Positions 10,263 to 46,539 of a DNA stretch of 64,000 bases are shown here, piece by piece. Both the position numbers and the translations under genes were made by a program. The stretch comes from Botryllus schlosseri (lineage: Eukaryota), in contig CM119376.1 in assembly GCA_051294905.1 (NCBI GenBank), positions 4,898,001-4,962,000 of the forward strand. The letters run 5' to 3'. Position 1 is the first letter of the stretch; each line of letters starts with the position of its first letter. A model generated the notes under the pieces. The model had not been told where the DNA came from, made no database searches, and saw nothing but the letters and a program-made list of their open reading frames with translations.

Positions 10263-11003
10263 ACAGTGGACATGCTCGACGACTGTCCGATAGCTGTCTT
10301 CGTCGACCCCTTTTGGACCGCCACGGACCCTCGCGGACCCTCGAAGTTTTAGTTCAACTATAGTGCAATCGTCATCTGTCTTGTGCAAATGATATCTGTA
10401 GGCTAGTGAAACAGCAACAAAATGACTTTTCTTGAAAATAACATCACACTATTTATCAGGGATATGTAGAACTGTCTAGTTCTAAATATCCCTGCTATTT
10501 ATGTAGAAATTGGGTTGACTTTTATTATTTGAAAGTGAACTTCGCAACTGCATTTCTTGAAATACGTGTTCATGTCTTGAAATTCCACGCCATCGACTTG
10601 ATAGAAAATCCATTTCCACAGAGATAGGTGTTGGCTAATGTAATAATAACGCGTAACGTTGCGACGACACATTTGGGTATGATCGCAACAAATATGGCAC
10701 TAAAATTGGCAAACATATTACGTCAAGCCTGGTCATTTCTATTGAGCAGCTCATCTTGAAGTTATTGCGGAAAATGGTTATGAATATCACAGAAAGAAAC
10801 AGATCTTTGTAAACATTTCGAAGTCACCGTGATTACTAATCCAACTTTTTATTCTTTCCACAACCCCCAAGTTCGGGAGTTTTACTATAGTAAGGAAGCG
10901 AAACCACCTCGTGATGATCCCAATTAAAAATAAATACGATTTAGGTTATCCGCTATTTTGTAAATTTAGAGGCTTCGCGGACCCCCGGTTGAGAACCACT
11001 GCC
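10263..11003 (-). mobile_element. hAT-type MITE (CAGTGGTTCTCAACC terminus family)
   Basis: Terminus ggttgagaaccactg near 11000; internal segments match 46877-47230 and 49200-49347 in reverse. The left terminus is degenerate. Confidence 0.65.
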
Positions 11004-11236
11004 CTAATTTAATCATTTAGTGCAAAATCCGGATCTTGCATCCTTCTACTAGATGACGCTGTGGCGTGATCGATACGTAAGGGGAATCACCGGATAGCTC
11101 TCTCCAGCTTATTTTCAGCGTGCAGCTGTCTTGGTTGTTTTACCATTATTTATTTCTAAATATTGTTTAGTACAGAAGGTGAGGTGGTCACGTCTTGCTC
11201 ATCTAATGAAGAGCATAGAAAATAAATAAATTCACA

Positions 11237-14200
11237 ATGGGTAGAAAAAGCAGGTCAAAGCAGTCCACGAAACCTTTGAATATTCCCGCATACTCGAATA
11301 AGAAAGAGGTTGACCGGCTTGTGCAAAAACTCATCCACGGTAAGGTACAAATTCATTATGTAATGCGTATGTTGAACATGTTTTACAATACTCAACAGTT
11401 TGCATGGTCCCCACTTCCAGGAAAGATGAATGGGACACTTATCTCCAAGTGGACTTTTTGGTGCAAAGAATTCGGCAATGTCAGACCACTCCAAGTAGGT
11501 TGATCCATAATTCCATATCTTTATTGCACGCATATTTCGGGCGAGGTACCTCTCTCATTTATACATCTACATTGTGCAATTTTACATAACCTTATTAACC
11601 TATGTTCCAGTGTTTTCTCTAAGAACTGTAGATTATTTATTGCTAGGTGTATAAGGTCAGTGTTGGCGTATTGCCTCTTGTTTCTAAGAATTTAGAAACC
11701 ACCACTTTTTTAGATGCACCACTAGAACCATAACTAGAACTGCTCACTTTTAAAAATCTGAAACTAGAACTACTTGCTTTTAAAAATCCTAAACTAGAAC
11801 TACTTGATAAACCAGTATAGTTACTAAACCCATTAACCGTCAACATGAATATAGATCGATAGTTTTCTCAAGTTTGCTCACATGACCAAGTTGCTAATTT
11901 TCAATCCAAGATGTTTACAGACTAGTTACTTGAACTTTGGAGTAGGAGCAGTAAATTTTTCACTAAATGCTGTTACTGTATTTTTCTTGCTATTGGGTCA
12001 TCCTACATTGTCTTGTGTTGAATTCATCCACCAATTGGCAATTTGAAATTTGTTTGATCTTTGCTACAGCTACCAGCCACAAGGAGAGGGTAGACAATGT
12101 GGGTAAGTTCAAGGAATGGATGCAAGAAAACGGTGTGTGTTTGGAAAAGTTGCAATTGGAAGATTACGGAGTTGAATTGGGGATCGGTTTGAAGGCTGTC
12201 ACAGATATCAAAGTAATTTGTATGTAATTATCACAAAGTGTTTGGGTATGAGTGTGACAATGTACAATTCTGATTCAACCTGAACAGTACAAAACTATCA
12301 CTGTTAGTCCCCCGCATACAGTTGGCTATATCTAATAAGATGCCGAATGCACTTTGAAATACCATCTATCTACTGCAGTGATGGTCAACCCGTGACCCGA
12401 GAGAAGGCTTTGAGTAGCCCGTGATGTAATTATCAAAATGAGGTATAATATAAAAAAAATCAATTACCCAGGTAATTTATTGTGAACTTGCAAGACCAAC
12501 CGAAAATTTGGTTAGCCTGACTGCGAACTTTGGGATGTTGATGATTAAAATATCAGTTTCGACGCATTGGCGTAGCCGGGGGCCAACCACATTTTCGTAG
12601 ATCTTCATAATGACCACACAGTGTAATATTTCGTTGCAGATTTATTTGACTTGACATTTTTCTCAGCCCTTCGCGCGATTTATTGTCACTAGGTTTCTCG
12701 CTTTTAGTATCACTTCCCCTCCTGAAAATTAAAAATACGCCTTATTTACGGAATTGAGTCCGACTATATCAGCAATGATGAGAGAACTTGTCGTCGAACA
12801 TGCGACTTCGCGTCTGCACTCGCAGAAGGATCGTCGGCGACGAAACCTTTGCACAAAATGATGGACGCGTGTTCACTGAAATCTTCGATATTGATATGTC
12901 CAAGCGCCGATTAATCACGTCCTGGCCAAAAGAGCCTAGCGGTATCCAGAGGCAACCTACAATATGTGCAACTAATTGACCGAATTCATTCATTAACTTC
13001 AATGTAAAAAGTTTCATATGCACATGTTCAGGTAATCAAAACATGTACACAGAGTTTACGTGGCATAATTATTATCGATTTTGATGCATAGTAATATAAC
13101 TCTTACTTCTAACATTACCAAATCCAGTTCGCTGCTATCGGAAGTCTAAAATCGGACATCAACGTTTAAGTGGCCAATCTCGTGTGGCCCTTTGACGGAA
13201 AAGGTTGGCCACCCCTGATCTACTGTATGTTACTGTTGTGAGAACAAACCGCTATTTGTTGCGAGATATTACTGTAATCTATATACTTTCCCACAGAGAG
13301 CCGACACCCTCATCGAGATTCCGTACAGGATGATGATGACGGCGGAAAAATCGAAGAAGACCTACCTCGGTAAAAAGGTAGCGAATCGACGCGTGGAAGT
13401 GTATAATCGGTCCTCCTATTCCAGCGGATTTTATCGAATCGAAAAGGTTACTGCAGGAGATGCCGAATATATCGCTCGCTCTGTTCTTGCATTGTGAGAA
13501 ATTCAACCCGGATTCGTTCTACAAGCCTTATATCGGTATGCGGTGGTGTTTTGTGGTCGATAGGCTGGATGTGTGGATTTTCGTTGGTAGTTTAACGATG
13601 TACCAGGCCAATAGTTTGTTTTCTATGAATATGTGTCACTATAAGGCAGACTTGGACAGCTAGATAATTCTAGTTGTTTACATCAAGGGAAACACCGGTT
13701 ATTTAATCCCAATCTAGCTTGTTAGATGTTTATTTGCTCTAATTTTAATTTATCTTCTGGTTTTCTTCAAAATGCCACAGGAAAACTGTACAGTGCAAAA
13801 CGAACCGAGTTTGCTGTGGAGACATTCATCATTCTCATACTTGTAAGAACGGACTCTAATTCAAGATGATTTGAACTTTATATATTTTCCAAGATTTTGA
13901 AAATTCAGTAATTCCGGACTTATTTGGAGAAATTGTGTAGATATAATTCTAATCTGATCTGGGATAGCATAAGTCTTGGTCAAAATAGGCATCACTGTAC
14001 CTCATTTGCAATACGTCTATCAGCAATTACTCAATGTTATAATGACTAATTGAGTAAATAACGCAAATAGAGAGTAGGCCTACTCTTCGGTGGTGGCAAA
14101 TGCGTAAAATGATTCGGTTAGAATCCTAGCACGCGGTCTATTGATTTTCTAGATGCCCTGCCTGGCGAATACAACACGGCCTTGTATTTCACACCGACAG

Positions 14201-30351: not shown

Positions 30352-30749
30352 GTCGAAGCTCACCTCAATGCATACGCAAAATCAAGTTACAACATAGAGG
30401 GTAAAGAGTACAACAACGATATGAAACAACACTGAAGTGGTCCTGGCGGAATTCTAGTGGAATCTTCGCTTTAACGTGAAACACCACGAATGATCATGTA
30501 AATCACTATTTCTGGGATTAACCCCGAGCGTATCGTGTAATCAGGAAATATCGACTACGGTTGAATTTTTTCTTTATTCGGGTCTAATTTGGAAAAAAAT
30601 CAGGATTTCGAGGCATAATTTAATGCAAAATCGTCATTAGCTCATTGCTATCTGAAATAAATCGAGGAATAATAGTCGACATGATTCGTAACATATTCTT
30701 CGCTATAGCGAAATTATTGAATGCAACCAGAAGCGTCGACTATAATATA

Positions 30750-31217
30750 TCGTACTTTCAACGTTGTATTTGAGAGTCGAGCGGACTTGCTAATAATACA
30801 ACCAATATACCACGGCAAAGTAATTAAATAGTTCTACAATATAAAAGCAATTTCAGAGTATAGCGGGTCTTAGTTTATTCAAAATAAGAGCGCAAAGTTG
30901 GTCTATAACGACGCATTTCAGGCATACGAATATACCAATTGACACGAAAATACGATACTTTCAGCGTTATATTTGAGAGTCGAGCGGACTTGTTAATGTT
31001 ACGACTAATATACCACGGCAAAGTGCTTAAATAGTTCTACAATATAAAAGTAATTTCAGAGTATAGCGGGTCTTAGTTTATTCAAAATAAGAGCGCAAAA
31101 TAGGTCCGTAACGTCGCATTTGAGGCATACGAATATACCAATTGACACGAAAATATGATACTTTCAGCGTTATATTTGGGAGTCGAGCGGACTTGCTAAT
31201 ATTACAACTCATATACC
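30750..31217 (+). repeat. 203-bp tandem repeat (~2.3 copies) upstream of WASHC2
   Basis: gagagtcgagcggacttg recurs at 30772, 30975 and 31178 (period 203). The third unit is truncated by the MITE starting at 31218. Confidence 0.9.
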
Positions 31218-31835
31218 CAGAGGTGGTCAGTAACGAAGTACTTCTACTTTTTGGAAGTACTCAAGTAGTTTTCCTCTACTTCTGGTACTTACTCAGGTAG
31301 ATCTGATTTTCTCTACTTCTACTTCTACTTCGTAATATCTTGTGATATACTTACCTACTTTTCGCTATATTTAGTTTGTCAAGTAGAAGTAGTTTAATCC
31401 CCCAATACGAAAGATAGTTTGATGAATTTCGGGGCTGTTTTCACGGAGTACCAACATTTATTATCAATAAAATTCAAGTGAAGCCCACATATTTTGTTGC
31501 GCTTCGCGCCCTATAGTTATGGAGTGACAAAGATGTTTTCAAGAAAGTATCAGTCAATATAATTTAGGTACCGGATTGCTTGGTTCCGCTCACATCATAT
31601 TGTCGCTCATATCAAATATTTCATCACTGTAAATATGGCCAGCCATAACGTTTGAAACTACCGCTTCGCAATCTAGGAATTACGTATTATCATATCGTAA
31701 TCTAGCAGCCCCTGAAAGTGTCCTGCTAATCTGGAAAATCCGGCTTTATTTATAACGATACCCCTGTTTTAGCAGATCAACTTTGAAGCTTCATCGACAA
31801 AAGACATGTCATATATTTTCCGCTTTTTAGCAGTG
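31218..31835 (+). mobile_element. MITE family with CAGAGGTGGTCAGTAACGAAGTAC terminus (copy 2)
   Basis: Reverse-complement similarity to 4930-5533. Confidence 0.7.
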
Positions 31836-32734
31836 GTATCTGTATTTCACTTTCAATTCCGAGTATCATACTTTGAGTTCTATAATTACTTTCACTTCTT
31901 TTGTCTGCAGAACATAAATGTTGAAGCATAAAAGCAAGTGTAGTAATGCCTCTATTATCCGAAAATAAAGCTACAGTAAATATAAATTTTACGATCCACA
32001 ATATCTGTTATTAACGAATACCTACAAATCGCGCAAAGTGTTGAAGCCGTATCCGATACAACTTCTCCGCATTGCTCGTCGTCTAAACTTGGGGCCTTAT
32101 AATATGGGGGAGGGCGCCATGCCACGATGTTCTCTTAAACGGGGTCTTCTAGTATACAACGGGTTGGTATAGCATTTTCATATCAGAAGAGCGTTCTGAA
32201 TTCAAGAGCGTTCTGCAAATGTATTTCAGACAACGAACACATCATTGGAAAAGGCCTTCAAAGTGCATATGCCTCAATTCCAATGTTGGTCAAGTTTCAC
32301 GCTGAATTCAAGAGCGTTCCGAGCCTGCATTTCGGACAATGAGCACCACTCTCTATTATTAGAGTAGTTTTTAAATTCGAATGTAAACTTTGCGTATTAT
32401 TCCGCTTTTGCCCAGTGCATGCTGCGTGTTTATTGATGACTCGTGTTTCAAGTGTTTATGTTTGTCGACTATCCCTTTGATTTGATATGTATGTAGTTTC
32501 CCGCTGATAGCATCATTTTCTTCGCTTGCTGTGTATACACGATCGGTGGTCATCCACCAGCAGTATTTCCCTAATTATACGCACTCCTGTATAATTTTGA
32601 GATTTTTCCATAATTGGCCTCGAATCTGATAAAATCTTACCCCTTTTGGCCAAATTCTTTCCGACTACTCACTATGCAGCTCATATTCGCTGAATAAAAT
32701 CGGTGTAACAGTGAGCGCGATTGCAAAGTATTAA

Positions 32735-33694
32735 GGCTGCTGCACACTGGCTTTGCGACACGACTAAAACAGGTAATTCCCCGATCGTGTCGCGCTCACG
32801 GTCGCGGTAGTTGCGTTCTGCTGCACACTGGGACACCGAGTTGTACACTCGTAACGTAGGCCTATCTGTTCTGTACCAGCTTAATGATTTCGTAACAGTA
32901 TAGGTTCTTGGTTATTACTTTTGAAGAACACATCAAGATACTTCCTACACATATGTGTTTTCTATGTGTACTGACAGCATTTTGCTGATGCTCCGAATTT
33001 TGATAAGGAATACACCATAATGCCACTAAGATCTCAAATTTGACAACTCAGTTTATTATTTCAAGTCAAGACGCAGATGCCCAATATACAGTACCCAAGA
33101 TACAAAGAATATAAACAAGAAGGTGTCTAATCGTGGATACGCCCCAACATACTCCATCAATCAGATATCTTTATAATACATGGGCCTACTCTTCTTGGCC
33201 TACCGGTACTTTCGTAATGTCAAGTATGTCAGTGGTATTGGCGGGATGGCGGTCATGTTCTCTGTTATTCATCTTGTATTGTGAACATATCGTAATTTAA
33301 TTATCAAATATATCTTCATTTCGTTCATCCATCTTCAAGTTATCAACTTGAGGTTGAATCATTCTTTTTCTGGGCTTGTTGGATATCATACAGCGCCCTG
33401 AGTCAATCCCAAGATAAATTACGCATCTGGTACACGAGTATCTTAAATTAGGAAGTTGAACGATTAGAAAAGATTGCAACAGCACCGTCGAAATAAGAGT
33501 GCGTGTTTATTTTCTACGGCGGCTGAGCCCGCAACTCGCGACAAAGTTGGATTTTTTCAACTTTGTCGGCGAGTTGCGTAGCCCGCTCGCCGACGCTTTG
33601 TTGCGTAATCTGGCGACGCGGTGTGCATGGTTTTGTCACAGACAGGCGCGATTCTCTCGTTTTGTCGTGTCGCGAGAGCCAGTGTGCAGCAGCC
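32735..33694. mobile_element. Non-autonomous DNA transposon with TTAA flanks (Kolobok- or Harbinger-like)
   Basis: Perfect TIR ggctgctgcacactggct / agccagtgtgcagcagcc with TTAA on both sides. GG..CC termini with TTAA fit Kolobok; the TIR also resembles Harbinger MITEs. Confidence 0.8.
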
Positions 33695-34121
33695 TTAAGT
33701 CGCATTTTGTATGTTAGCGTGAGATTGCACATCTAGCACAGTATCAGTCGCATGAGTTGAATCTATTGAAACTTTTATTGGATCAGTGATTTGTGTTTTT
33801 TTCAAGTTGTATAATTATGCCGTAATTGTGTAAATACTTTCGAAAAAACATGTAGAATGTATCTCCTGTTCTCGAGAAATTTCTGTGACCGTCATAAAGT
33901 TACATTTTCAAGTTGGAAATCGCCAGTGTGACGTCATGTCCAGAATAAAGTCGCGTGCAACCCTTGCCCCACCCCTCGATATTGTCACGAGCCACTGTAT
34001 GGTTTATAATTTTTAGATCATAATTTACGACGATCAAGAAGTCGTGGAAGGTATAGTATTGCAGGTAGTCCGATTTTACTTGTCAGTTGTCAGATAGCGC
34101 AGCAATCCGAAAGGTGTAATT

Positions 34122-34710
34122 ATAGAAATTAAACATGGAACGGCAACGACCGATTTTGCAGCTTCGATCCGCTTCGCCGAGGCTGGAGTGGAGAATTGTT
34201 TTGCTTCAGCGACTGTAGGATTTCTGGCAACCCAAAAGCTATCTTTCCGAGCGCAGAAATTACTGAATCTGGTCTTGATCGAAAGCTACTGTTGCACCGA
34301 TTCCGAAAATATAAATTAAAATATTGATCAGGCACTGATCCACCTAGAATCTGTCCTCCAAGTCTGAAATATCGGCATTGTTCAGAACAATCGGGTAGCC
34401 GCAACACATTGGCCACAACAATGACCCGTTGCGACTCTCCGATTGTTCGAACAATGCCGATATTTCAGACTTGGAGGACGGATTCTAGGTGGATCAGTGC
34501 CTGATCATTATTTTAATTTATATTTTCGGAATCGGTGCAACAGTAGCTTTCGATCAAGACCAGATTCAATAATTTCTGCGCTCGGGAAGATAGCTTTTGG
34601 GTTGCCAGAACTCCTACAGTCGCTTAAGCAAAACAATTCTCCACTCCAGCCTCGGCGAAGCGGAACGAAGCTGCAAAATCGATCGTTGCCGTTACATGTT
34701 TAATTTCTAT
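34122..34710. mobile_element. Foldback element (~270-bp inverted arms, ~45-bp spacer)
   Basis: ORFs 34129(-) and 34443(+) are mirror images. Flanks ggtgtaatt / agtgtaatt give a 9-bp TSD with one mismatch. Confidence 0.88.
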
Positions 34711-35089
34711 AGTGTAATTGTATGTGTTAAATATGGGAAGACTATATATAATGGTCGCTCAGGCAAATACAGTGGCAAGCCGCCGTCGCCTTATTTACAC
34801 CGTGCAGCCAAGCTCACAGCACACAGAGAGTCACTAAATATTCAAAAATGAAAAACTGGATATTTCGAGCAACCTTTTGTAACAAACCAACTAATATGTT
34901 TGAGATTGTCAAGGTGCATGTTCGTTTAGTGTTGATTTTATTATGCTGCCATCGTCATGCATAGAGTGGCCCGCAGTTGAAATGCAATAAATTTCAACCA
35001 AAGATGTTATAATGAAGTGAAAATTGTAATATATCAAACCCTCCCAGTAGAGGTTTCGTTGTTTTGACATATTTCAGGTGACTCTAATT

Positions 35090-36273
35090 CAGGGGTCGCC
35101 AACTCAAAATAGGTCGCGGGCCACTTTTCCAAATTCCTGGAGGCCGCGGGCCGCATGACATCAATTTCGATATAAAAGTAGGCAACGCAGTTCAACAACC
35201 ACGTCTGATAACTCTACGTTATTACAACGCTGTGCTTTCTAACATAGGCGACGGTTATAGTCACCACAAAAGAACTAATATTTTATTGAACAAACACATA
35301 TACAAGAAAAAGTATCATGATCATCAATGTCATTATATTTTGGACTATGAGCTGTACACGATACCTGACAATGACAACACTCTTTAGCCGCTAAAACAGG
35401 GGTGGCCAACATTTTTGTAATTCACGGCCGCATTTCGGGTACTCATGTAGCCTGCGGCCGCATACCGGTGGTTAGTCGTGATAAACTAGCTTGGGCCAAA
35501 TACCCACGTTATCATGTCCATGTCCATTGCCGGTACACTCCGAACTAATCTATATGTACATATCGGCTTACTATGCGCACCAAATCGTTAGTAGTTATGT
35601 TGTAAAGAGCCACAGAGAACCAATCCGTATTCGCGCGAAGCGCGAAAAATTTTCCATGTTCATGAGGGAATTTCGTCAATAAATATTAGTATAGTTTCAC
35701 ATATTACTATACAATATTTATCCTTTCTCGGCCAATGTGATCAGATTCCCAGATACAGCTGATGCAGGGGGTATCTGCGAAAACTTAGGGTTGTTATTAC
35801 AAGTGTCGACAGCCGCATAATTTTCCTTCCACTGCTGCAGATTGGCCCCCCATGGATTGAAGAATCAATATTGGGGTTAGCTATACACGGTAGGCCTACT
35901 TGCTAGACAACTATCTCCTCGTAAAGCATGGTCTTTTGGAGCGCCCGAAGTCGTTTTGCAGGCGTCTCGGTCTTGGCAGTGGTGGGCCATTGCACGTCAA
36001 GGCAATATGCCCATTCGTACCAGCAAATTCTTCATCCATGGAATGATATTACCATGCCGAAACCGTATCAACTAGTGAGTAATAGTGATAGTGGGCACAT
36101 AGAATGGCTCACTTTGAAAAACAACAACATTATGTTTCAACTGAAATCAATTTTAGCGTTTCAACATGATTTACTAAGCGTTTTTCTGAATTTTTTTCAA
36201 ATCAGGTCGCGGGCCGCAAAATAGGACCTCGCGGGCCACATGCGGCCCGCGGGCCGCGTGTTGGAGACCCCTG
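35090..36273. mobile_element. hAT MITE directly upstream of the transposase ATG
   Basis: TIRs caggggtcgccaac / gttggagacccctg; TSD ctctaatt / ctgtaatt (7/8); gcgggccgc subterminal motifs. A second caggggtggccaac end is nested at 35397. Confidence 0.8.
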
Positions 36274-36321
36274 CTGTAATTAAATGAGTATTATGCCCTA
36301 TAATACTAATATATATTCAAC

Positions 36322-39300
36322 ATGAAGCAGAAGAAGCCAAAGTTTGACATAAAAGCTGTAGCATTTTCTTTGGCGATTTCACTTGATGCTATTCCTTCTC
36401 CACAATCCCCTCTAAAGCGTGCAGTCGTCGCACAAGCATGGAAAATACGTCGTACAGTCGCATCTCCTAGAAATATAACGACGGTTTACGATTTGTGGAA
36501 TACTAGCTCTGACTTCAGGGCCATGGTATTGAAATATTTCCAGGAGCACCATCAGCTAAATACTGACGTACATGAATCTCGAGAGGAGTCTCTCCAAGTA
36601 CATACAGCGGAGAGTGGTCTAGAACAGTGATTCCCAACCGCGGCCCCCAGCTAGCCTTCTTGCGGCCCCCCAAGAAATATTGAGAAATCGATTTATGAAA
36701 AAATTATTGGGTACTCTTCGACCAAGATAAAATACGCAAGATTTATAGAAGTGGGCATATCGGCGTTGGCCAATACCGCGCCACGACGCGCGAAGACATA
36801 TAAAGTTTTAGGCCATGTAACATGCGACTCCAAGAAGTGTGCCAGAACAATCGGCAGCGAGAAAACCTTAACCGAAAAGGACTGCCCTTACGCTGACCGA
36901 AAACTTCGTTATGTATATTCAAAATACATATAGGTTTAATTGACCATAGGCGCCTAAATGACTGGCGCCGAATGTTCCTGTCTTGGCAATCTGAACGTCA
37001 CGAGACAAATAGGCTACCATCCCGCAGGGAAGAATTATATGCCAGTGAAGAACTACCAATTTGAAATCATGTGCATCTTTTAGTTTAGTATGTTTGGGCG
37101 ATTCTATAATTCTTGATATAGCAGACTGGAGGTCACGAAATAACAAATAACATCATGTAACGAAGTCGTACCAACGGGTCCACCCGTCCGAATATGCTTA
37201 ATTATTATTTACGGGCCCTACACTTTCCAAGACACCTCAGTCAGCTGTACCGGTAAATCTGACTACGTGAGCAGAGAGGACAAGTAATTGATAGCAATAT
37301 ATATGCAATTCCCGATCTTATTGACCTATTTTATTTTGAATTATCGAAAATTTTCGTGCTCCACGCTGGCTCACTAAACGGGGATCCTGATTTCGTGGCA
37401 GAAGCGAACAACGGCACGGGGGTCGGTTTATCACCCTATGGGTGCTCAATACCTAAGTGTTTTTTTTGGGGGGGGGGGCGACGAAGTGCTGTTTCGTTCT
37501 TGCCAACGGGTATACGCCCGAAGATGTTTAATTATTATTGAGTGGTCCTACTTTATCAAACACAACTCACTCGGCTCAACCGGTCAATCTGATTACGTGA
37601 GCAGAGAGAGGATAAAAACTGATACCAATATATATGCAATTCCCGATTATATTGACCGATTCAATCATGAATTATATAAATTTTTCGCGCTTCGCGCGAT
37701 TAGTCGAGAGAAGCTGCCTAAAACGGACACCCGATTTAGATGATAAATAAGGGTAAACAGCCATCTAGCCTGAGGGGGTCTGGGGGCTTCGAAGTTCTGT
37801 TCATCACCCTATGGGGGGCCCAAGAGAAACGTTTTTTTCGGGGGGGGGGGGGGCGACGAAGTGCTGTAACGGCACTGGTGCAACAAGTGACTCACGATTG
37901 AATACGCCGAGATGCGTACTGCTTATCCGGCAAAAAGCAGCATAATTGGTAGTCCTATAGCTCGCGACTCAAGCGTCCGAATAATTTGATATGTCGGTGT
38001 TCATCGAAAGCAAGTGTCGCACTGATTCCAAAAATACGAATCGGCAATAAAACTACACCGAAATAGCCAGCAAAGGTTGATTGTTCTGAACAACGGGAGC
38101 GCGGCAACACAATGGCCAATGGCGTCAAGCGAATGATCGGAAAAATGTCAATTTTCATATTTTGATGACAATTTTGGGTTCCTTACATTGCCTTGGTATT
38201 CGTGCGGCCCCGGCCGTACTCTGAAATTCTAAATTTGGCCCTGCCACCGAAAAAGGTTGGGAACCACTGGTCTAGAACTTTCGGAAGCGACACGAAATAC
38301 CCGCGTCGAGGAGAACTCCACGATTGACCAATCAAATCTTGAGCACTGTAAAGACACAGAAGCCGTATATTGTTACTGCAAACGACCGTATCGAGGTGAA
38401 TTCATGGTACAGTGTGAAGATTGCAAATTTTGGTTTCATCCTACATGCGCCTTTCGACCCGACAGTAAAGAATCGAAATTTGATCATAATCAATGGCGTA
38501 CTGTATCCTTGCACTGTAGGGTCGACCATAACACAAGCACACAGCGCCCGTTTTATACTCACGCACCTCAGATTGACAATCGTTATGTCGATAAAGAACC
38601 AACGCCGCCCACGCCTCTCCTCAATGAGTTCACGGGACAAGATGGAATGGTAAATGCTTGGGAAGCATGTGATCATACCAAATCGCTTCCACAGTCCCAG
38701 ATTACGTCGATTTCTAAACCTGCCGGGCACAGCGAAATTAATGAATCATGGGTGAGTGATTCCGCAATCGAATCTATTGGAGGAATGACAGCGAAGATCT
38801 CGGACAAGATCAAAGAACCTGATGAGGTGAACTTACGACAGTTAACTTCAATTACTGCAGAAGAATGGAAAAGAGCCATTCAAAATCGAGGCCAACATCA
38901 TTTTGCCAACAAATCTCCGTACGCAGCGACACTTATACGGGCGCTTCGGCAAGTATATGATTCATGTGTGCCGATGATAAAAAGTAATTATTTACGTGCT
39001 CAAGACAAAGTGACAGAGATTACGACGGAATGTGATCGATATTACGAAGGCAATGTTGTACTGTACTGCGGTCATAAAACATGTTGCGAATGTACAGTCA
39101 CTATCCATGCTCAATTGTACAGTATGGTAAATTCGGCGCAAATCGACTTTCATATAACCGGAAACAGGCATCATCGACATGAATGTACTAAATCAAGAAG
39201 AGTCAAAGGCGAACAGCGGCTTCATCTGAAAGAGGAGCTTGATTACAAAACCCCGACTCAAGTGCATCGACATTTATTTGATACATTGTCTGAAAATGAA

Positions 39301-42300
39301 CGATTTTTGGTTCACATACATTCGCACCTTCGACTGACGTTCTGAAAGACATCAAAAGAGATGGTTGTCCAGTGGTAAAATATTCCAAAAACTGGCTATT
39401 CTGCATGGAGAAATTGGTGAAAATATTCACGAATGAGAAGAAAACTAATTTTCTGCGTGCGTGGTCCGCGAATCCCCCAACCGTAACTACGTACAATGAC
39501 GGGCAGATCAATATCTATAAAGAGCTGTGCCGCGTGGATTTCCTTTTCATCGATGGCTCAGGGGGTGTTTTGCGCAGCAGTAAAGGCTTGGGAAATTTTC
39601 AAATCTATGTGCTTTTTGTGCGAAATCCAAGAAAGTGTCGACCGGGAATGCCGGTAGCAAGCTTTCTCACAAGCAAGCATGACGCAATCACAATTGGAAA
39701 CTTTCTGCGAGACTTCATACGCGATTCTTAGGGCAGAGAGCGATCCACGAAACCTCAAATCATTGTAATAGACGGTAGTAAAGCGGTATGGAATGCAGTT
39801 TTGGATGCATTTACCAGAGAAAATAGACTTCAGTATTATTACCGATGCTATCGCATTGTAACTGGCAATGCTACGCAAAATGACATGGAAAAGACATTCG
39901 TAATAAATTGCTACAGTCACAGCATGAAAGCTGCATCCATCCTGTGTCGGAAGCATTACAAAAAGGGATTTGTTGCCACTGCAATGTATTGGATCGGTCT
40001 GTTACTGTCGCAAGATATGCTATCAAAAATGGACGAGATAATGCGCCACATTTGTATTGTGTTGCTTTCTCCAAAATGTACGCCAGTTGTTAATACCAGC
40101 TTTGCGTCTCTGTTATCGCTGCAGAGCGAACAGGAGAATCCAACTGATGCTGCTGTAAATGATCTCAATGAGCCAAGCCACGACGAGGATTATTTTTCTG
40201 GAATAATTCCCGTCGATAAAAAGCAAGAGTTGCAGTCTCCATTTTATACTCGATATCGCAATCTTGAGAAAGAGTGGATGTCAGCAACAGCAACTCGTTC
40301 CAACCTGGAAAGTCAATGTGACGACAACGTCTATTACTCTCCGTCATTTTACACCAAGTTCGTCGAAGTAATCGCTAGTCGACTCGGCGTAACCTCGCGC
40401 CTTCTTCTGGGAGACTTATCAAGGCACAGTCGTCCTGAAATTCCTTCAAACCATTACATGAAATTTGCAAATTGGTGGAAACAATTGAAGAAATATCCTG
40501 GATGCTCAATCTGCGACGGTACAAGAACGCAAGGTGCAATTGAGCAATTTTTCCGACAGTTGAAGCGAAACTATCTAAACAACAAGCGTGCATCAAATGT
40601 ACCAAAGTTCGTATGGGACTACGAAGATGCAACGAGAGTAACTGGTAAATCGTTTGCTGATGATTTAGTGAAAGTCAAGTACGGCTCGCGGCCCGTACCG
40701 AAACGGAAACTCCAAATATATCATCAAGAAGAACATCCGGTACATAAAAAGCCAAAATTTCTTGAGTCGAAATTCAAGAGACGAAGCCAAAGAAAGGGAT
40801 ATTACGGAACTCCCACGGCCGCCGAAAAAATCAGGGATCGTAACTCAAAATCATTGACACCGGAGGGAAAATTCGCAGAAACGTACGTTGTGGAAGTCGA
40901 TACAAGAACACGCCTTGTCGACTGTCGGTACGAAATTGACAGACACAGCGATCAATTCGAAATTCGAAGTCGTTGTGACGTATGCTGATATAATGTCTGT
41001 TTGCCCCAACCCATCAGAGAAAATGATTCAAAATATTAATAAAATCATGGCAAATGACACTAAACCAGGATGGCTAACAGAAGGTATTGTTAATGCTTTT
41101 GTAATCCAGTGTGCGCTCAACGGAAATTCTCAGTTAAATGAAAGCCATTTTGGGTATCTGACAACGGACATGACTCATTTCATACTTTCTGGAAATAAGC
41201 CTCGAGCAGTTCCAGACACTATTCTTGATGACAATCGGCACTTACGCATGGTCATACTATTACCAATCCTTATTCGTCGGGATTTCAATCATTTTGCTCT
41301 TCTCTGTTTTCAAGAAAAGAATAAAATAATCACATTTTTCGATTCCTCTGGTGCCCGTGATACGGAGGAGCAACACGAGATTTTATCGTCATTTACCCAA
41401 TACCTTTCTGGTATTTCTAGGATAGATGTGAACAGCGTGAAGAAGGAATTTTGCGGCGACTTCCTTCAAACCGACTCTTCGTCGTGCGGTGTTTGTACAT
41501 GTATGGCGGCGTGGAGCATATGTTTGCAAGACAAGCACCGTACACATTTGCAAAATGACTTCCGTCATAAAATCATTTGGGACCTACGTCAAGATTATCT
41601 GACATCATCGCACATTGTGCGAAATGCGGAAGTTGAATGTGGCATTATATCCCAGATACCTGGACTCGAAAATCTTGGAAATACCTGCTGGTTCAATGCT
41701 GTTATGCAAACATACTCTCATGTCATACGGCAGGGATTGGGGCCACTGGATGAGAGTAGGCAAATTCTTGGGGAATTCGCGAATATACTTATCCCCTTGA
41801 CAACCTTGAAGGCGGTTGAACGTGACGTATTGCTGAATGCTGTTAAAATTGCATGTGAGAGAACTAAATTGGAGTACGGTGAGCAGCACGATTGTTCTGA
41901 GTTCTATCCAATATCTTCGCTGCCACAAGTATTGGGAGATCTTTGTTGGAAGAACGAATTGAGATACGAGAGGATCATCCACTGCGACGAATGCCAAACG
42001 AATGGAACAACACTCCATCAAGAAAAAATCTTCAACGTGAATTGCGGAGTTGCATCGGTAGCAGAAGCATTTCAGATTTCACAAATCATATGTGAAAAAT
42101 GTGGTTTCGCGATCAATACTAATGTCAAGTTCACTGAAGTTCCGAATCTAGTGACAGTGCGCCTCAATCGTGTGGACTCTATAGGTAGAAAGTTGGAAAA
42201 TACCGTCTTGGCCAACCGAAACCTCCACATTCAGGGACCTGATCAAGGTTGGATCGGATATTCGCTCAGGGCTGTGGTTGCACACATCGGATCGGACGGA

Positions 42301-43011
42301 GACTGACACAATATCGCATATTTAGTCGAGAAGAAATGCTCGGTACGGCTATGCAACGACAAAATTGTGGAATTTGTGGATTCGAAAGAAGCTTTCAATG
42401 CTATGTCAAGGAATGGATACCTCTTTATTTATCTCAAAACAATAAAGCGAAGATTACCTCTGCAAAACTCCCGCAATCGTGAATATTTCATGAAAAGTCT
42501 GCCATTAAAAATGATGGATATCAATGAAGAAGCTAAAGCAATCGGTGACACAATATTTCAGGACATTGTAAATGTTTGTCATCTTACATTACACGAGTCG
42601 CAAAAGGACGTCCGTAGTCAGCGACATGCCCTTTTTCTCCGAAGCAAACACACTGAATTGCAGAAAATGATCGTACCTGTTGGACAAAATGACCTTGAAG
42701 AAATCGAAGTCATATTCCAATATATCAAAAACAAGACCTGCATCTTACAAGCGAAATGGATCAGATATTTGAACACAGGATCAGGATACGTCGCATACAA
42801 CACATTTTCGCGAATAATTTTCAACAAGGCTGTGGTGCGTGAGGACAGTGAGCTCATGAAGAAATTAGAACCAACACACAGCAGCGACAAGTATTTCAAG
42901 TTGGTTGTGTTGCAAGAAGTTACTTTGATGTTTCTGTCCATTACTCAGAAGAGGACATACGAAGAAGTTTTGGAAAATCTGAAGGTGCCATATGAATGGC
43001 GAAAAAAATGA
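36322..43011 (+). pseudogene. Disrupted Mutator-superfamily (NOF-FB-like) transposase polyprotein with PHD, Ulp1 and USP domains
   Basis: ORF 36322-36624 joins in frame to 38278 when the hAT insertion 36625-38269 and one GTCTAGAA TSD are removed. Frameshifts at ~39305 (T-run) and ~40888; in-frame stops TAG 39729-31 and TGA 42304-06. Motifs: PHD YCYC..QCEDC..WFHPTC (38368-38448); Zn ribbon CGHKTC..HHRH (39067-39180); D in FIDGSGG (39552); D in IVIDGSK (39771); CxxH (39909-39920); E in GAIEQFF (40542); Ulp1 H 41290, D 41341, Q 41467, C 41485; USP GLENLGNTCWFN (C 41686), QHD (41884), His box H 42307, ND 42355-60. Confidence 0.88.
36625..38269. mobile_element. hAT (Charlie/Buster-like) non-autonomous element inserted in the transposase ORF
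   Basis: TIR cagtgattcccaacc / ggttgggaaccactg (14/15) with a perfect 8-bp TSD GTCTAGAA (36617-36624, 38270-38277), fitting the NTCTAGAN target preference of this hAT group. Confidence 0.92.
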
Positions 43012-43997
43012 ATTATAACTTACGTTTCTGCAGCTTTCGTCTCGTATTTTGAGTATACTTTTTTGTTGAATAACTATCCAATTCCATTTCATTGGTAGTT
43101 TTGTTAGTTTACTTTTGTTCTGAAATCGCGCAAGACTTTTAAATAGCATGTCGCATGAACGCGTAGGCCAGAAATAAGTATTTACCGGCAAATATTAGTT
43201 TCGTACTTTAAATACGCAATGACTCATTAGACCATACCTGGACATTTTAAGGTCCGCGAAAAGTTGATTGGAAAATGTGAATGCGTGGACTAACACTATA
43301 TAGTCTATACATTACATTACGTAGCCTACGTACATCGCATGCATATACTCCAGATTCAAAATAAAGCCAATATAAAAAGGTATGCCGTAACAAATAAAAT
43401 CGCAACTCACTCTTTCTATATAGTATAGTTCAAACCATGTTTTTTTTTTAATTTCCATTGTTACATTCAGAATTACACGCCGCGTGCTTTTATGTTTTGC
43501 GTCGTGCGAGAATTTCATGAAAACAGAAGCGGAGGCTGAAGACCGACATTTTGCAGAGATTTGTGCCACTAAATATTGTACTCAAGTCAGAGGTATAAAC
43601 GCATCCTTTTAGTTTGTGGTGAGCAAGTTGCCGTGGTTAAGGCATATAAGTTGAGTCGGCATTATGCGAAAAACTGCTAGTGAAATACAGACACTCGGGT
43701 GAGGCTTAGAGAGAGCGCGAATTTCGGATGACTTATTTTACCAAACTGCACACACCTCGGAATGCAGCGACCAAGACCAAGAATAATGACAATGAATATA
43801 TAGTATTTTTTGTAAATTAACCCTCACTTTTTATGACCTAATATTCAACGTTTGACTCAACAAAGTATTTTCTGCATCACATTTGACCCCTCGTGAAAAA
43901 TAATTTCACATCCCAGTTCTGACTGGAAGTACTTTTGTGCTAAAGAACTATCCAATACCGATTCCTTGGTGGTTTCATTGTGATATTTGAAGACGTG

Positions 43998-44324
43998 TGT
44001 AGCCGTTCGGTCGTAGTCTTCGCTATCTAACTGAATGCGGCTATATTACTTCAGGTTCGACTGGACCCAGAGACACATTGCAGATTCGACGGATATATTA
44101 CAACGAAGGCAGGCACAATAAACACATCAATACTTCCAATCCAATCCAAGACTTAACACAGCAACAACTCCATACATAGACCAATTCCAATCCCAATCCA
44201 ACTACATACACAAAGACTAACTCAAATCACTTCCTCTTTTCAATACCGCATGTTACCCTACGCATGACTGGTCTTACAACCAGATAGTCCGGAGTCATTA
44301 TGGCTCCGGAGCCGAGCGGTTACA
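43998..44324 (+). mobile_element. Solo LTR (327 bp), probably Gypsy/Ty3
   Basis: TG...CA ends, terminal inverted repeat tgtagccg / cggttaca, 4-bp TSD CGTG on both sides and AATAAA at ~44117. Confidence 0.75.
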
Positions 44325-44579
44325 CGTGCCAGACTTCTAAGTAAAATATTGAAAGTAAGCTACTAGTGATACTATTCCTATGGACGCGTAGGCCTGAAAT
44401 AATATGTATTTAGACCAAAAATATTGACGAGCTTTTTGTAGGCAGAGACGAGACGACAGATTTCGCATACTCGGAAAGGGTCGTTTACTCTTTCAATTAT
44501 CAAGATACACCAGTCAACGCTGTGTATCATCTAAAAATAGTACATTGAACGCTCTCGTATTCGACATTTCATGCTGTTG

Positions 44580-44850
44580 ACGTCTTACTTTGACGATACG
44601 ATACGATACGATGTGATACGATTGGTGATATACGATGCTCTAGTGAATTCTCTACTAGTTGATGACGATTACCCCTGACGAGTTTCGGCCGAAAATATTC
44701 GGGTACATTTCAATATGACTATTATGCTAATCAATTGTACATTGATGTACTTTACCTCCAAGGAGCTGTACAATCGAATAATATATTCATATTGAAATAT
44801 ATACCCGAATATTTCAGCTGACACTGGTCAGGGGTAATCATCAACAACTT
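44580..44850. mobile_element. Palindromic MITE family fragments
   Basis: gacgattacccctgacgagtttcggccgaaaatattcggg followed by an inverted partial copy; same family as 57483-57803. Confidence 0.65.
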
Positions 44851-45379
44851 TTCCAGATTAGATTAGAATTAGATTACTGGCATTTCGCTCTAATTTAATG
44901 AAATTAGACGACTATAATTATCTAGTTGTCCAAGTCTGGTTCACACTTTCATTTGTCATATTTGGTGATGCGTGTGTTGGTATACAATGTCCTTTCCAAT
45001 CCTCTGCTAGTTGTTAACGATTACCCAATACCGTTTGTGTGATAATTTTATGATTTATTAAAATAGCGAATAACGAGGAAATAACGCTGCATCAAATCTG
45101 TCTTCAAATTCAGTTTTACAATAAATTAGTCGTGATTAGTCAAAAATTCCGCCCGAGAAGTCGACATTTCCGACCACTTGATACGCAAGGGGTTAATATT
45201 GACTATTCGTTCGCCATAATGTTTCACGTGATCATTCGCCGTGTTTCACCTCAGTGCAAGCATTCCGCCGAAATTCCGCCAGGACCACTTCAGTTCTCAA
45301 GTCAACAGTGCACTTGAATGTTCATGGAGCACACGAATAATTTGAAGGACATCATAATATTTTCTAACATAAAAAATTC

Positions 45380-45748
45380 GGTTGCCAGTAAACTCGGCCC
45401 AAAGTAAATTCGGCCCAGGCAAATTCGGCCATTACATCAGTAAATTCGGCCCACCGAGAACATTGTATTAAAATGTATTACCAACCGTTAACATGAATTA
45501 ATTACATAATTATACTATTATTAAGTGATTTGGATGTCAGGGTGTGCGTAGATCGCGTAATCACGGGAGATAGCGCGGATATTCACTGGGACCGGATTTA
45601 CCGACGGCCGAATTCACCGGTCAATTCACTCTTTACTCGGTCAATTCTGCCCTCGGAGAATTTTTTATAAAAATGTATTACCAACTATTAATGTGAATTA
45701 ATTTCATAATTATATTATTATCAAGTGATTTGGAGAACAGGGTATGCG

Positions 45749-45779
<31 letters not shown>

Positions 45780-46398
45780 GCCGATGTTTACGGGGCCGAA
45801 TTTACCGACAGCCGAATTCAATCGGTATATTCGGCCCTCGGAGAACATTGTGTGAACTAAGAATGTGTATTATATTACATAATTATAATATTATCAAGTG
45901 ATTTGGAGGTTAGGGGTTAGGTTTAGGGTTAGGATTAGCGTTAGGGTTAGGATTAGGGTTAGGTTAGGGTTAGGATTAGGGTTAGGTTAGGTTAGGATTA
46001 GGTTAGGATAAGGGTTAGGTTAGGATTAGGGTTAGGGTTAGGTTAGGTTAGGATTAGGGTTAGGTTAGGATTAGGGTTAGGATTAGGGTTAGGTTAGGAT
46101 TAGGATTAGGGTTAGGGTTAGGTTAGGTTAGATTAGGGTTAGGTTAGGGTTAGGTTAGGTTAGGATTAGGGTTAGGATTAGGGTTAGGATTAGGGTTAGG
46201 ATTAGGGTTAGGGTTAGGTTAGGATTAGGGTTAGGTTTGGATTAGGGTTAGGGTTCAGGTTAGATAATGTTATTGTAACTGTTGTTGTTACTCTGGCCCT
46301 GGCCGAATTTACCGAGGGCCGAATTCACCGACGGCCGAAGTGACCGAGGGCCGAATTCGACGGGCCGAATTTACCTTGGGCCGAGTCTACTGGCAACC
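45380..46398. mobile_element. Foldback/MULE-type non-autonomous element carrying a telomere-like array
   Basis: TIR ggttgccagtaaactcggccc / gggccgagtctactggcaacc with reiterated AATTCGGCC subrepeats and a perfect 9-bp TSD AAAAAATTC (45371-45379, 46399-46407). Three ~190-bp internal direct repeats and an (AT)n tract. Confidence 0.9.
45908..46263 (+). repeat. Interstitial telomere-like array (mixed TTAGGG / TTAGG / TTAGGA)
   Basis: About 355 bp of ggttagggttaggattagg variants read directly from the sequence. Confidence 0.95.
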
Positions 46399-46539
46399 AA
46401 AAAATTCACCAACATTTTTAAAATTCTTGCCAGATTATGTGATAGTGTTTTATCAAGTTACTAGTTACCCGATTACTCCGAGTTAAATATCCGGCTCCAT
46501 CAGTGGACGCAAGGTTCTCGACAGCGTGACAGACTTACA

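Follow-up and report, generated by a model that had tools for sequence, protein, structure and literature searches.

A probable decayed NOF/Rehavkus-type Mutator transposon in Botryllus schlosseri, with a PHD finger and predicted C48 and C19 proteases fused to its transposase

A 64,000-nucleotide (nt) stretch of the Botryllus schlosseri genome (assembly GCA_051294905.1, contig CM119376.1, positions 4,898,001 to 4,962,000 of the forward strand), hereafter called the window, holds at 36322-43011 one repaired reading frame of about 1,677 codons, delineated from the list of open reading frames (ORFs) and the frame translations. The encoded protein comprises, in order, a variable N-terminus, a PHD finger, a putatively WRKY/FAR1-like zinc ribbon, a DDE transposase core, a Ulp1-type protease (C48), a ubiquitin-specific protease (USP, C19), and a tail. 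The gene is broken by a nested hAT-like miniature inverted-repeat transposable element (MITE), two frameshifts, and two in-frame stop codons. It belongs very probably to a degenerate copy of a cut-and-paste DNA transposon, spanning 30431-45294, of the NOF/Rehavkus branch of Mutator (Mutator-like elements, MULEs). Searches used the ORF pieces and naturally intact relatives as queries. The pieces and lesions of the gene are the following:

36322-36630, + strand: N-terminal ORF piece, frame 1
36322-36624, + strand: ORF part A, the N-terminal 101 codons, unconserved in relatives and joined to part B in DNA contigs
38257-39345, + strand: ORF piece, frame 1
39372-39731, + strand: ORF piece, frame 3, ending at a stop
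39732-40988, + strand: ORF piece, frame 3
40888-42306, + strand: ORF piece, frame 1, ending at a stop
42307-43011, + strand: ORF piece, frame 1
42370-43011, + strand: C-terminal tail without recognisable relatives, ending in TGA
39304-39308, + strand: frameshift 1, a run of five T; other copies have one extra T
40881-40888, + strand: frameshift 2, ACGTACGT; other copies are 4 nt shorter
39729-39731, + strand: in-frame stop TAG; other copies read C at 39730
42304-42306, + strand: in-frame stop TGA, aligned with the Gly of the family GHY motif in the USP

When the MITE is excised together with one copy of its target-site duplication (TSD), 1,653 nt (3 × 551) are removed, and ...ESGLE is joined in frame to LSEATR.... 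An earlier note on this DNA had proposed a single frame after excision of the hAT insertion and repair of two frameshifts and two stops, and this is confirmed by the translations, by the terminal inverted repeats (TIRs) and TSD of the insertion, and by sequencing contigs. The tblastn alignment with a naturally intact relative, P0003, switches frame exactly at 39303, without a gap. The note had also placed the stop at 42304 on the Gly of the USP GH motif; the family alignment does put the TGA at the GHY Gly, and the His and then the ND of the USP lie directly after it. Introns were considered as the cause of the frame changes and rejected: relatives are uninterrupted ORFs, the P0003 alignment is contiguous across 39303, and other copies differ by 1 nt at 39303 and by 4 nt at 40881-40888. 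The gene is single and intronless, with no coding homology upstream of 36322 and no second copy in the window (tblastn with all pieces and 150 relatives). The window copy is dead, without a function of its own.

The state of other copies can be read from contigs of public sequencing runs, from the same organism and from a second one, aligned over positions 36320-42319. DNA contigs of both organisms skip exactly 1,653 nt (36614 to 38268), and MITE-free copies of the gene therefore exist. All contigs over the sites show one T more after 39303, are 4 nt shorter at 40882-40886, and have C at 39730, so that other natural copies are in frame at these three of the four point lesions. The three point lesions are private to the window copy or possibly, for the homopolymer, an assembly slip. 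Within the same genome, other copies are free of at least four of the five lesions (the MITE and the three point lesions), and several sequence variants, at 90-99% identity, occur in the DNA contigs of the two organisms. Contig depth is about 35-180 over the gene, against 10^4-10^5 over the MITE at 36625-38269, one of the commonest sequences in the organism's contigs, both DNA and RNA-library. In-frame versions of the gene are also present in contigs from libraries guessed to be RNA.

The domains and motifs of the repaired frame are listed below:

38368-38529, + strand: PHD finger, putatively of the H3K4me3-reader type by sequence (PF00628, E 1.3e-6, 28.7 bits against 24)
39067-39186, + strand: zinc ribbon CX4C...HXH, WRKY/GCM1/FAR1-like, putatively DNA-binding, placed by its motif positions
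39546-39566, + strand: first catalytic Asp motif FIDGSGG (DATG in the family), from the family alignment
39762-39782, + strand: second catalytic Asp motif IVIDGSK (D invariant in the family), from the family alignment
39909-39920, + strand: CxxH motif CYSH (C nearly invariant, H invariant), from the family alignment
40536-40565, + strand: catalytic Glu motif AIEQFFRQLK (E and K nearly invariant), from the family alignment
41287-41490, + strand: Ulp1/C48 catalytic core, with H in NHFALL, D in FFDSSG, Q and C in QTDSSSCG
41677-42369, + strand: USP/C19 domain, with Cys box GNTCWFN, QHD, CDEC and CEKC fingers, His box, and ND, interrupted by the TGA at 42304-42306

The motifs that the earlier note had named are all present, i.e., FIDGSGG, IVIDGSK, CYSH, and AIEQFF in the core, the H, D, Q, and C of the C48 protease, and GNTCWFN, QHD, two CxxC pairs, and the His box of the USP; its call for a Pfam check was answered by PHD, Peptidase_C48, and UCH matches, all over their gathering scores.

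The fusion is found well beyond the window. P0003 is a single uninterrupted ORF of 2,074 amino acids (aa) on a 13.6-kb Tara metagenome scaffold, L001 (4495-10719), and is collinear with the window protein over the PHD finger, zinc ribbon, core, C48, and USP. Its PHD finger is preceded by an unconserved N-terminus of about 490 aa; on the scaffold, a 200-aa ORF (10703-11305) overlaps its end, and a TIR search around it on the 13.6-kb scaffold yielded no clear termini. The order seen in the window, with C48 before USP, also occurs in P0153, P0154, P0158, and P0163, while P0029, P0033, P0048, P0066, P0082, P0086, P0089, P0105, and P0155 have the core followed by the USP, about 350 aa, and then C48. 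Eight further long relatives have the core with UCH and C48, and both UCH and C48 recur among 61 more; a word-indexed protein search added few extra relatives. Holothuria leucospilota and Styela clava supply the named relatives, whose annotation is that of ordinary, uncharacterised genes. Maximum-likelihood analysis of the core places the C48-first and USP-first proteins in sister clades (support 100/97 and 100/98), and the domain-order labels are far more clustered on this tree than shuffled labels. Domain order thus tracks the core tree, which indicates that the proteases have long been co-inherited with the transposase. At the sequence level, these comparisons establish the fusion of PHD, C48, and USP as a family trait inherited together with the transposase. 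They bear out the order that the earlier note had given (PHD, zinc ribbon, DDE core, Ulp1/C48, USP/C19 in one ORF), in the window and in the intact P0003. As regards its question whether intact copies would have separate ORFs, the intact relatives carry transposase and proteases in one uninterrupted ORF.

MULEs are known to capture host sequences (PMC6446971, PMC8277862), and the two protease orders could mean repeated capture, so that the PHD finger, C48, and USP might be passive host fragments acquired in the manner of Pack-MULEs, with no role for the element. This is very improbable, as both proteases retain their catalytic residues in relatives at 20-35% identity, the domains share the transposase ORF in many independent uninterrupted ORFs, and their order follows the core phylogeny; together, kept residues, shared ORFs, and order on the tree point to long vertical co-inheritance under constraint.

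The superfamily of the core was determined from conserved residues and from a predicted fold. A HMMER search with 39732-40985 as the query, over 1.84 billion representatives, retrieved 180 relatives. In a 48-sequence alignment of the core (about 700 aa), D286, D360, C406xxH409, E627, and K634 are invariant or nearly so, and the DDE residues with C/DxxH after the second Asp, as expected of Mutator, are found in the 48 relatives and in the window. An AlphaFold (AF2) model of P0003 residues 701-1450 (mean confidence pLDDT 80.9, pTM 0.74) suggests that the core, with its D, D, CxxH, and E, is an RNase-H-like domain with a large helical insertion. Its best Foldseek match in Swiss-Prot is the 120.7-kDa NOF-FB protein of Drosophila (E 5e-23 over 668 residues), followed by the MULE-derived alpha3 of K. 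lactis (5e-10), FAR1/FRS proteins (about 1e-9), ZSWIM3/9, and IS256 transposases. Against the PDB, the IS256-family transposase ISCth4 (6xg8) comes first (E 1.5e-5), with RAG1, Hermes, and the P element scoring behind it; among prokaryotic elements, IS256 is recognised as the relative of Mutator. Matching AlphaFold Database clusters are auto-named Transposase, MULE transposase domain, USP domain-containing, Ubiquitin-like protease, PHD-type, and NOF-FB. A phmmer search of the core against PDB sequences gave nothing useful. The model has a beta sheet at residues 89-157, corresponding to the zinc ribbon, where the FAR1/FRS alignments start; fingers of the WRKY/GCM1 type are known as the DNA-binding domains of MULE and FAR1 proteins. 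A Mutator/NOF-like core, which the earlier note had called from its motifs, is thereby supported by the modelled structure: NOF-FB ranks first in Swiss-Prot, ISCth4 ranks first in the PDB, and D, D, CxxH, and E are conserved.

For a core from another Ulp1-carrying superfamily (Zisupton/KDZ or Ginger), one could invoke the lack of a Pfam MULE domain in the window, the earlier note, which had named Zisupton as an Ulp1 carrier, and Ginger1, which has Ulp1 and PHD (PMC2836005). Nevertheless, there is no KDZ or integrase Pfam match in the 73 relatives scanned (the KDZ and CxC families are absent from the window as well), and the structural matches are NOF, FAR1/FRS, ZSWIM, and IS256, with hAT, RAG1, and P element far weaker and retroviral integrases matching only as a common RNase H core. 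Membership in Zisupton/KDZ or Ginger was rejected on the MULE fold and deserves next to no credence; since the core is a MULE, a comparison with Zisupton was needless.

The PHD finger has six canonical ligands and C7, with a non-canonical eighth ligand in the clade of the window, where only one conserved Cys remains of the last ligand pair; CxxC is kept in more distant members. A Tyr preceding C1 and a Trp preceding the His are conserved. The best relatives of the finger in the PDB are EBS, SHL, Spp1, DIDO1, PHF2, PHF8, PHF13, and BPTF (E 4e-10 to 1e-4), which are H3K4me3 readers. The Peptidase_C48 match (PF02902) scores 2.2e-4 and 21.6 bits in the window, against a cut-off of 20.7, and up to 55 bits in relatives; the catalytic residues are conserved across the family (H in 31/31, D in 24/30, Q in 26/26, and C in 26/26). 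The UCH match (PF00443) is stronger in the window (1.5e-9, 38.3 bits against a cut-off of 23.9), and relatives cover the whole 254-position model, with the Cys kept in 29 of 30, the Trp in all 30, and the zinc CxxC pairs and GHY conserved. Searching the USP and C48 pieces against the PDB with phmmer was uninformative, giving only a USP16 Cys-box match and a leucine-rich repeat (LRR) match. The latter lies in the linker before the C48 core (40858-41628, piece residues 75-135), which matches a chimera of Toll and a variable lymphocyte receptor (VLR) at 3.6e-5 and internalin/VLR repebodies at about 0.01; a short LRR-like stretch or an effect of composition may account for this match.

Two proteases in one chain raise the question of cis-acting cleavage, in which one or both would cut the fusion into separate reader, transposase, and deconjugases, i.e., a literal polyprotein, the label used in the earlier note. 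Adenoviruses, poxviruses, and Polintons use clan-CE proteases to process their own proteins, the C48 region of the window is weakly similar to vaccinia I7 (PF03290, E 0.017) and one relative to adenain (PF00770, E 0.0088), and the inter-domain linkers are long and poorly conserved. Nevertheless, these viral matches fall below threshold and are outscored by the Ulp1 model; between the domains, neither a GG site nor any sequence resembling ubiquitin or SUMO was noticed, though no search was aimed at them; and USP domains are not known to process polyproteins, apart from ubiquitin-fusion cleavage. Self-processing is improbable, and the polyprotein label is not retained, as nothing indicates cleavage of the fusion protein.

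The limits of the element and the sequences nested in it or within the gene are given below:

30431-45294, + strand: proposed whole transposon copy, 14,864 bp, or about 11.4 kb without the nested MITEs and hairpin
30431-30690, + strand: left terminal inverted repeat, with 23 perfect nt followed by about 75% similarity
45020-45294, - strand: right terminal inverted repeat, inverted similarity
36625-38269, no strand: hAT-like MITE 1, which splits the ORF, with 15-nt TIRs CAGTGATTCCCAACC / GGTTGGGAACCACTG, one mismatch
36617-36624 and 38270-38277, no strand: 8-bp TSD of MITE 1, GTCTAGAA, fitting the hAT pattern nTnnnnAn
35090-36265, no strand: hAT-like MITE 2, with TIRs CAGGGGTCGCCAAC / GTTGGAGACCCCTG and 8-bp TSD CTCTAATT / CTGTAATT
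34121-34711, no strand: nested hairpin element, 263-nt arms, 97% complementary, and 65-nt loop
30753-31217, no strand: tandem array of a 203-bp unit (2.3 copies, 91% matches), close to the left inverted repeat on its inner side

The proposed TIRs start with ACTGAAGTGG. The terminal 23-mer, ACTGAAGTGGTCCTGGCGGAATT, occurs only at 30431-30453 (+) and 45272-45294 (-), with 0 occurrences expected by chance, and imperfect inverted similarity extends about 250 nt past these perfect termini, in agreement with the long TIRs of Mutator. An AT-rich 18-nt inverted match at 36302/43793 was tried as termini and rejected, being a chance match beside the ATG. These termini bear on the possibility that the locus is the pseudogene remnant of a host gene, one that encoded a domesticated fusion of transposase and proteases. 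The relatives in Styela clava and Holothuria leucospilota, annotated as ordinary genes, and the lack of a visible TSD would suit such an origin; yet perfect 23-nt inverted termini flank the gene, and its several 90-99% variants occur in the DNA contigs of two organisms. A host-gene origin is very improbable.

MITE 1 has the features of a non-autonomous hAT element (an 8-bp TSD of the form nTnnnnAn and short TIRs starting with CAG); it is without a transposase, and the call is therefore based on TSD and TIRs alone. It holds internal 330-bp direct repeats (37185-37366 versus 37515-37697, about 80%), and GGCCGCGGGCC-type motifs are common to it and to MITE 2, which sits 57 bp upstream of the transposase ATG. 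The hairpin at 34121-34711 lies in the non-coding 5' region of the transposon and probably represents a MITE of the foldback type. The 203-bp array recalls the minisatellites of Rehavkus and foldback elements, yet lies on the 5' side. Directly after the right end of the transposon comes a unit of about 1 kb (45377-46401), which has 40-nt inverted arms (45377-45416 / 46362-46401, 93%), is also bounded by 16-nt GGCCGAATTTACCGAG repeats, and includes the telomere-like hexamer GGTTAG in about 62 degenerate copies (45908-46263) as well as 200-bp repeats (45431-45915).

A mechanism can be proposed for the intact element. The transposase core would excise and integrate the element, while the PHD finger would tether the protein to active, H3K4-methylated chromatin. 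Tethered in this manner, the C48 protease and the USP may strip SUMO and ubiquitin, at the element or the target site, from factors involved in chromatin, silencing, or repair, or alternatively from the transposase itself, and such deconjugation could favour expression, stability, or completion of transposition. This functional reading, i.e., PHD tethering with SUMO and ubiquitin removal, is tentative, and we place it below an even chance. A more specific version, somewhat more doubtful still, would be a transposase-borne counter-silencing kit, in which an H3K4me3-reading PHD finger places a deSUMOylase and a deubiquitinase at the element or its target. The kit would erase the SUMO or ubiquitin marks that nucleate piRNA- or heterochromatin-dependent silencing, or those that mark the transposase for degradation. 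If true, it would constitute a transposon-encoded anti-defence system in animals.

Several points weigh against the interpretation as a whole. At the proposed termini no TSD is seen, as the flanks TGAAACAAC / TCTCAAGTC match at 3/9 positions, where Mutator elements would have 8-11 bp; the limits may be imperfect or the copy rearranged. No Pfam transposase model matches the core pieces of the window, and PF10551 (MULE) is touched by only one of 61 relatives, at E 1.4e-3; these misses are explained by a family too divergent for the model. The match of the zinc-ribbon family profile to WRKY structures is weak (E 0.028-1.5), and the C48 score of the window is barely above its cut-off. Clan CE peptidases can cleave SUMO, NEDD8, or ubiquitin, so that sequence leaves the substrate class of the C48 protease undecided among the three and "SUMO-type" is a predicted label; protease activity, histone binding, and an effect on silencing are likewise predictions. 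Frameshift 1 lies in a homopolymer and could, therefore, be an assembly error. Contigs from RNA libraries hint at transcription of better copies, with the caveat that these libraries may hold DNA. With all this taken into account, the best overall explanation is a decayed NOF/Rehavkus-type MULE with a reader and dual-protease transposase; we consider it likely, with a confidence close to that placed in the assignment of the element.

Several parts of this architecture are known from other elements. For Mutator transposases, Ulp1 alone or with PHD has been reported from hydra, lancelet, and plants; an IS5-like transposase of Trichomonas is noted to bear a C19 domain, and Ginger1 to carry OTU or Ulp1 (with PHD) (PMC2836005). 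UCH and C48, and also OTU, occur in Helitron-like elements (PMC11417382). Rehavkus elements with a PHD finger are catalogued and were grouped with MULE by Yuan and Wessler, and they are described as having a TSD of 9 bp and, ahead of the 3' TIR, a minisatellite (PMC6446971). Literature searches, without a Repbase/Dfam comparison, brought up no description of a MULE that has C48 and USP together. Less is novel here than the earlier note had implied: only the added USP on a MULE was absent from the literature searched, while Ulp1 and PHD in MULEs had already been published. Within the literature searched, the dual-protease transposase is an undescribed variant of a known theme.

Among known systems the closest is NOF of the Drosophila FB-NOF element (UniProt P16320), by far the best structural match of the core, the alignment with which spans from the zinc-ribbon region to the end of the DDE core. 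Like the window element, FB-NOF is large, with long inverted ends, but sequence identity is only 14%. The window family has PHD, C48, and USP within a single ORF. A lead only is provided by an ESM Atlas cluster with the automatic name NOF-FB, in which C48 occurs in 45% of the members, PHD in 34%, and UCH in none. For Rehavkus, compared by description, a PHD finger is catalogued; the window element also has one, but is without a visible TSD, has its array on the 5' side, and has only dispersed repeats near its 3' end. A USP is not mentioned for Rehavkus in the literature consulted. KAONASHI-type plant MULEs and the MuDR elements of hydra and lancelet combine, as here, a Mutator transposase with C48, some with PHD, but no USP/C19 appears in the reports, and the plant elements are of the MuDR rather than the NOF branch. 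The IS256 family (ISCth4), the best solved-structure match of the core, is much shorter and without PHD, WRKY-like, or protease domains.

Ginger1 and Helitron-like elements are unrelated transposons that also carry ubiquitin/ubiquitin-like (Ub/Ubl) proteases, but Ginger1 has an integrase-like DDE and Helitron-like elements have RepHel, and they are described with single protease domains rather than with a C48 and USP pair. As Ub/Ubl proteases are found in such unrelated DNA transposons (Ulp1 in MULE, CACTA, and Ginger; OTU and UCH in Helitron-like elements), they constitute a recurrent theme, the role of which has, to our knowledge, never been tested. Such transposon ORFs are auto-named 'USP domain-containing protein' or 'Ubiquitin carboxyl-terminal hydrolase 36', and recognising them is of use for annotation. 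Among these systems, the present family offers a good test case, with two predicted deconjugases, their catalytic residues conserved, and a putative histone-mark reader kept on a transposase across deep divergence, and the same genome, which holds copies without the MITE and the three point lesions, provides a defined system for studying whether a transposon manipulates SUMO and ubiquitin signalling.

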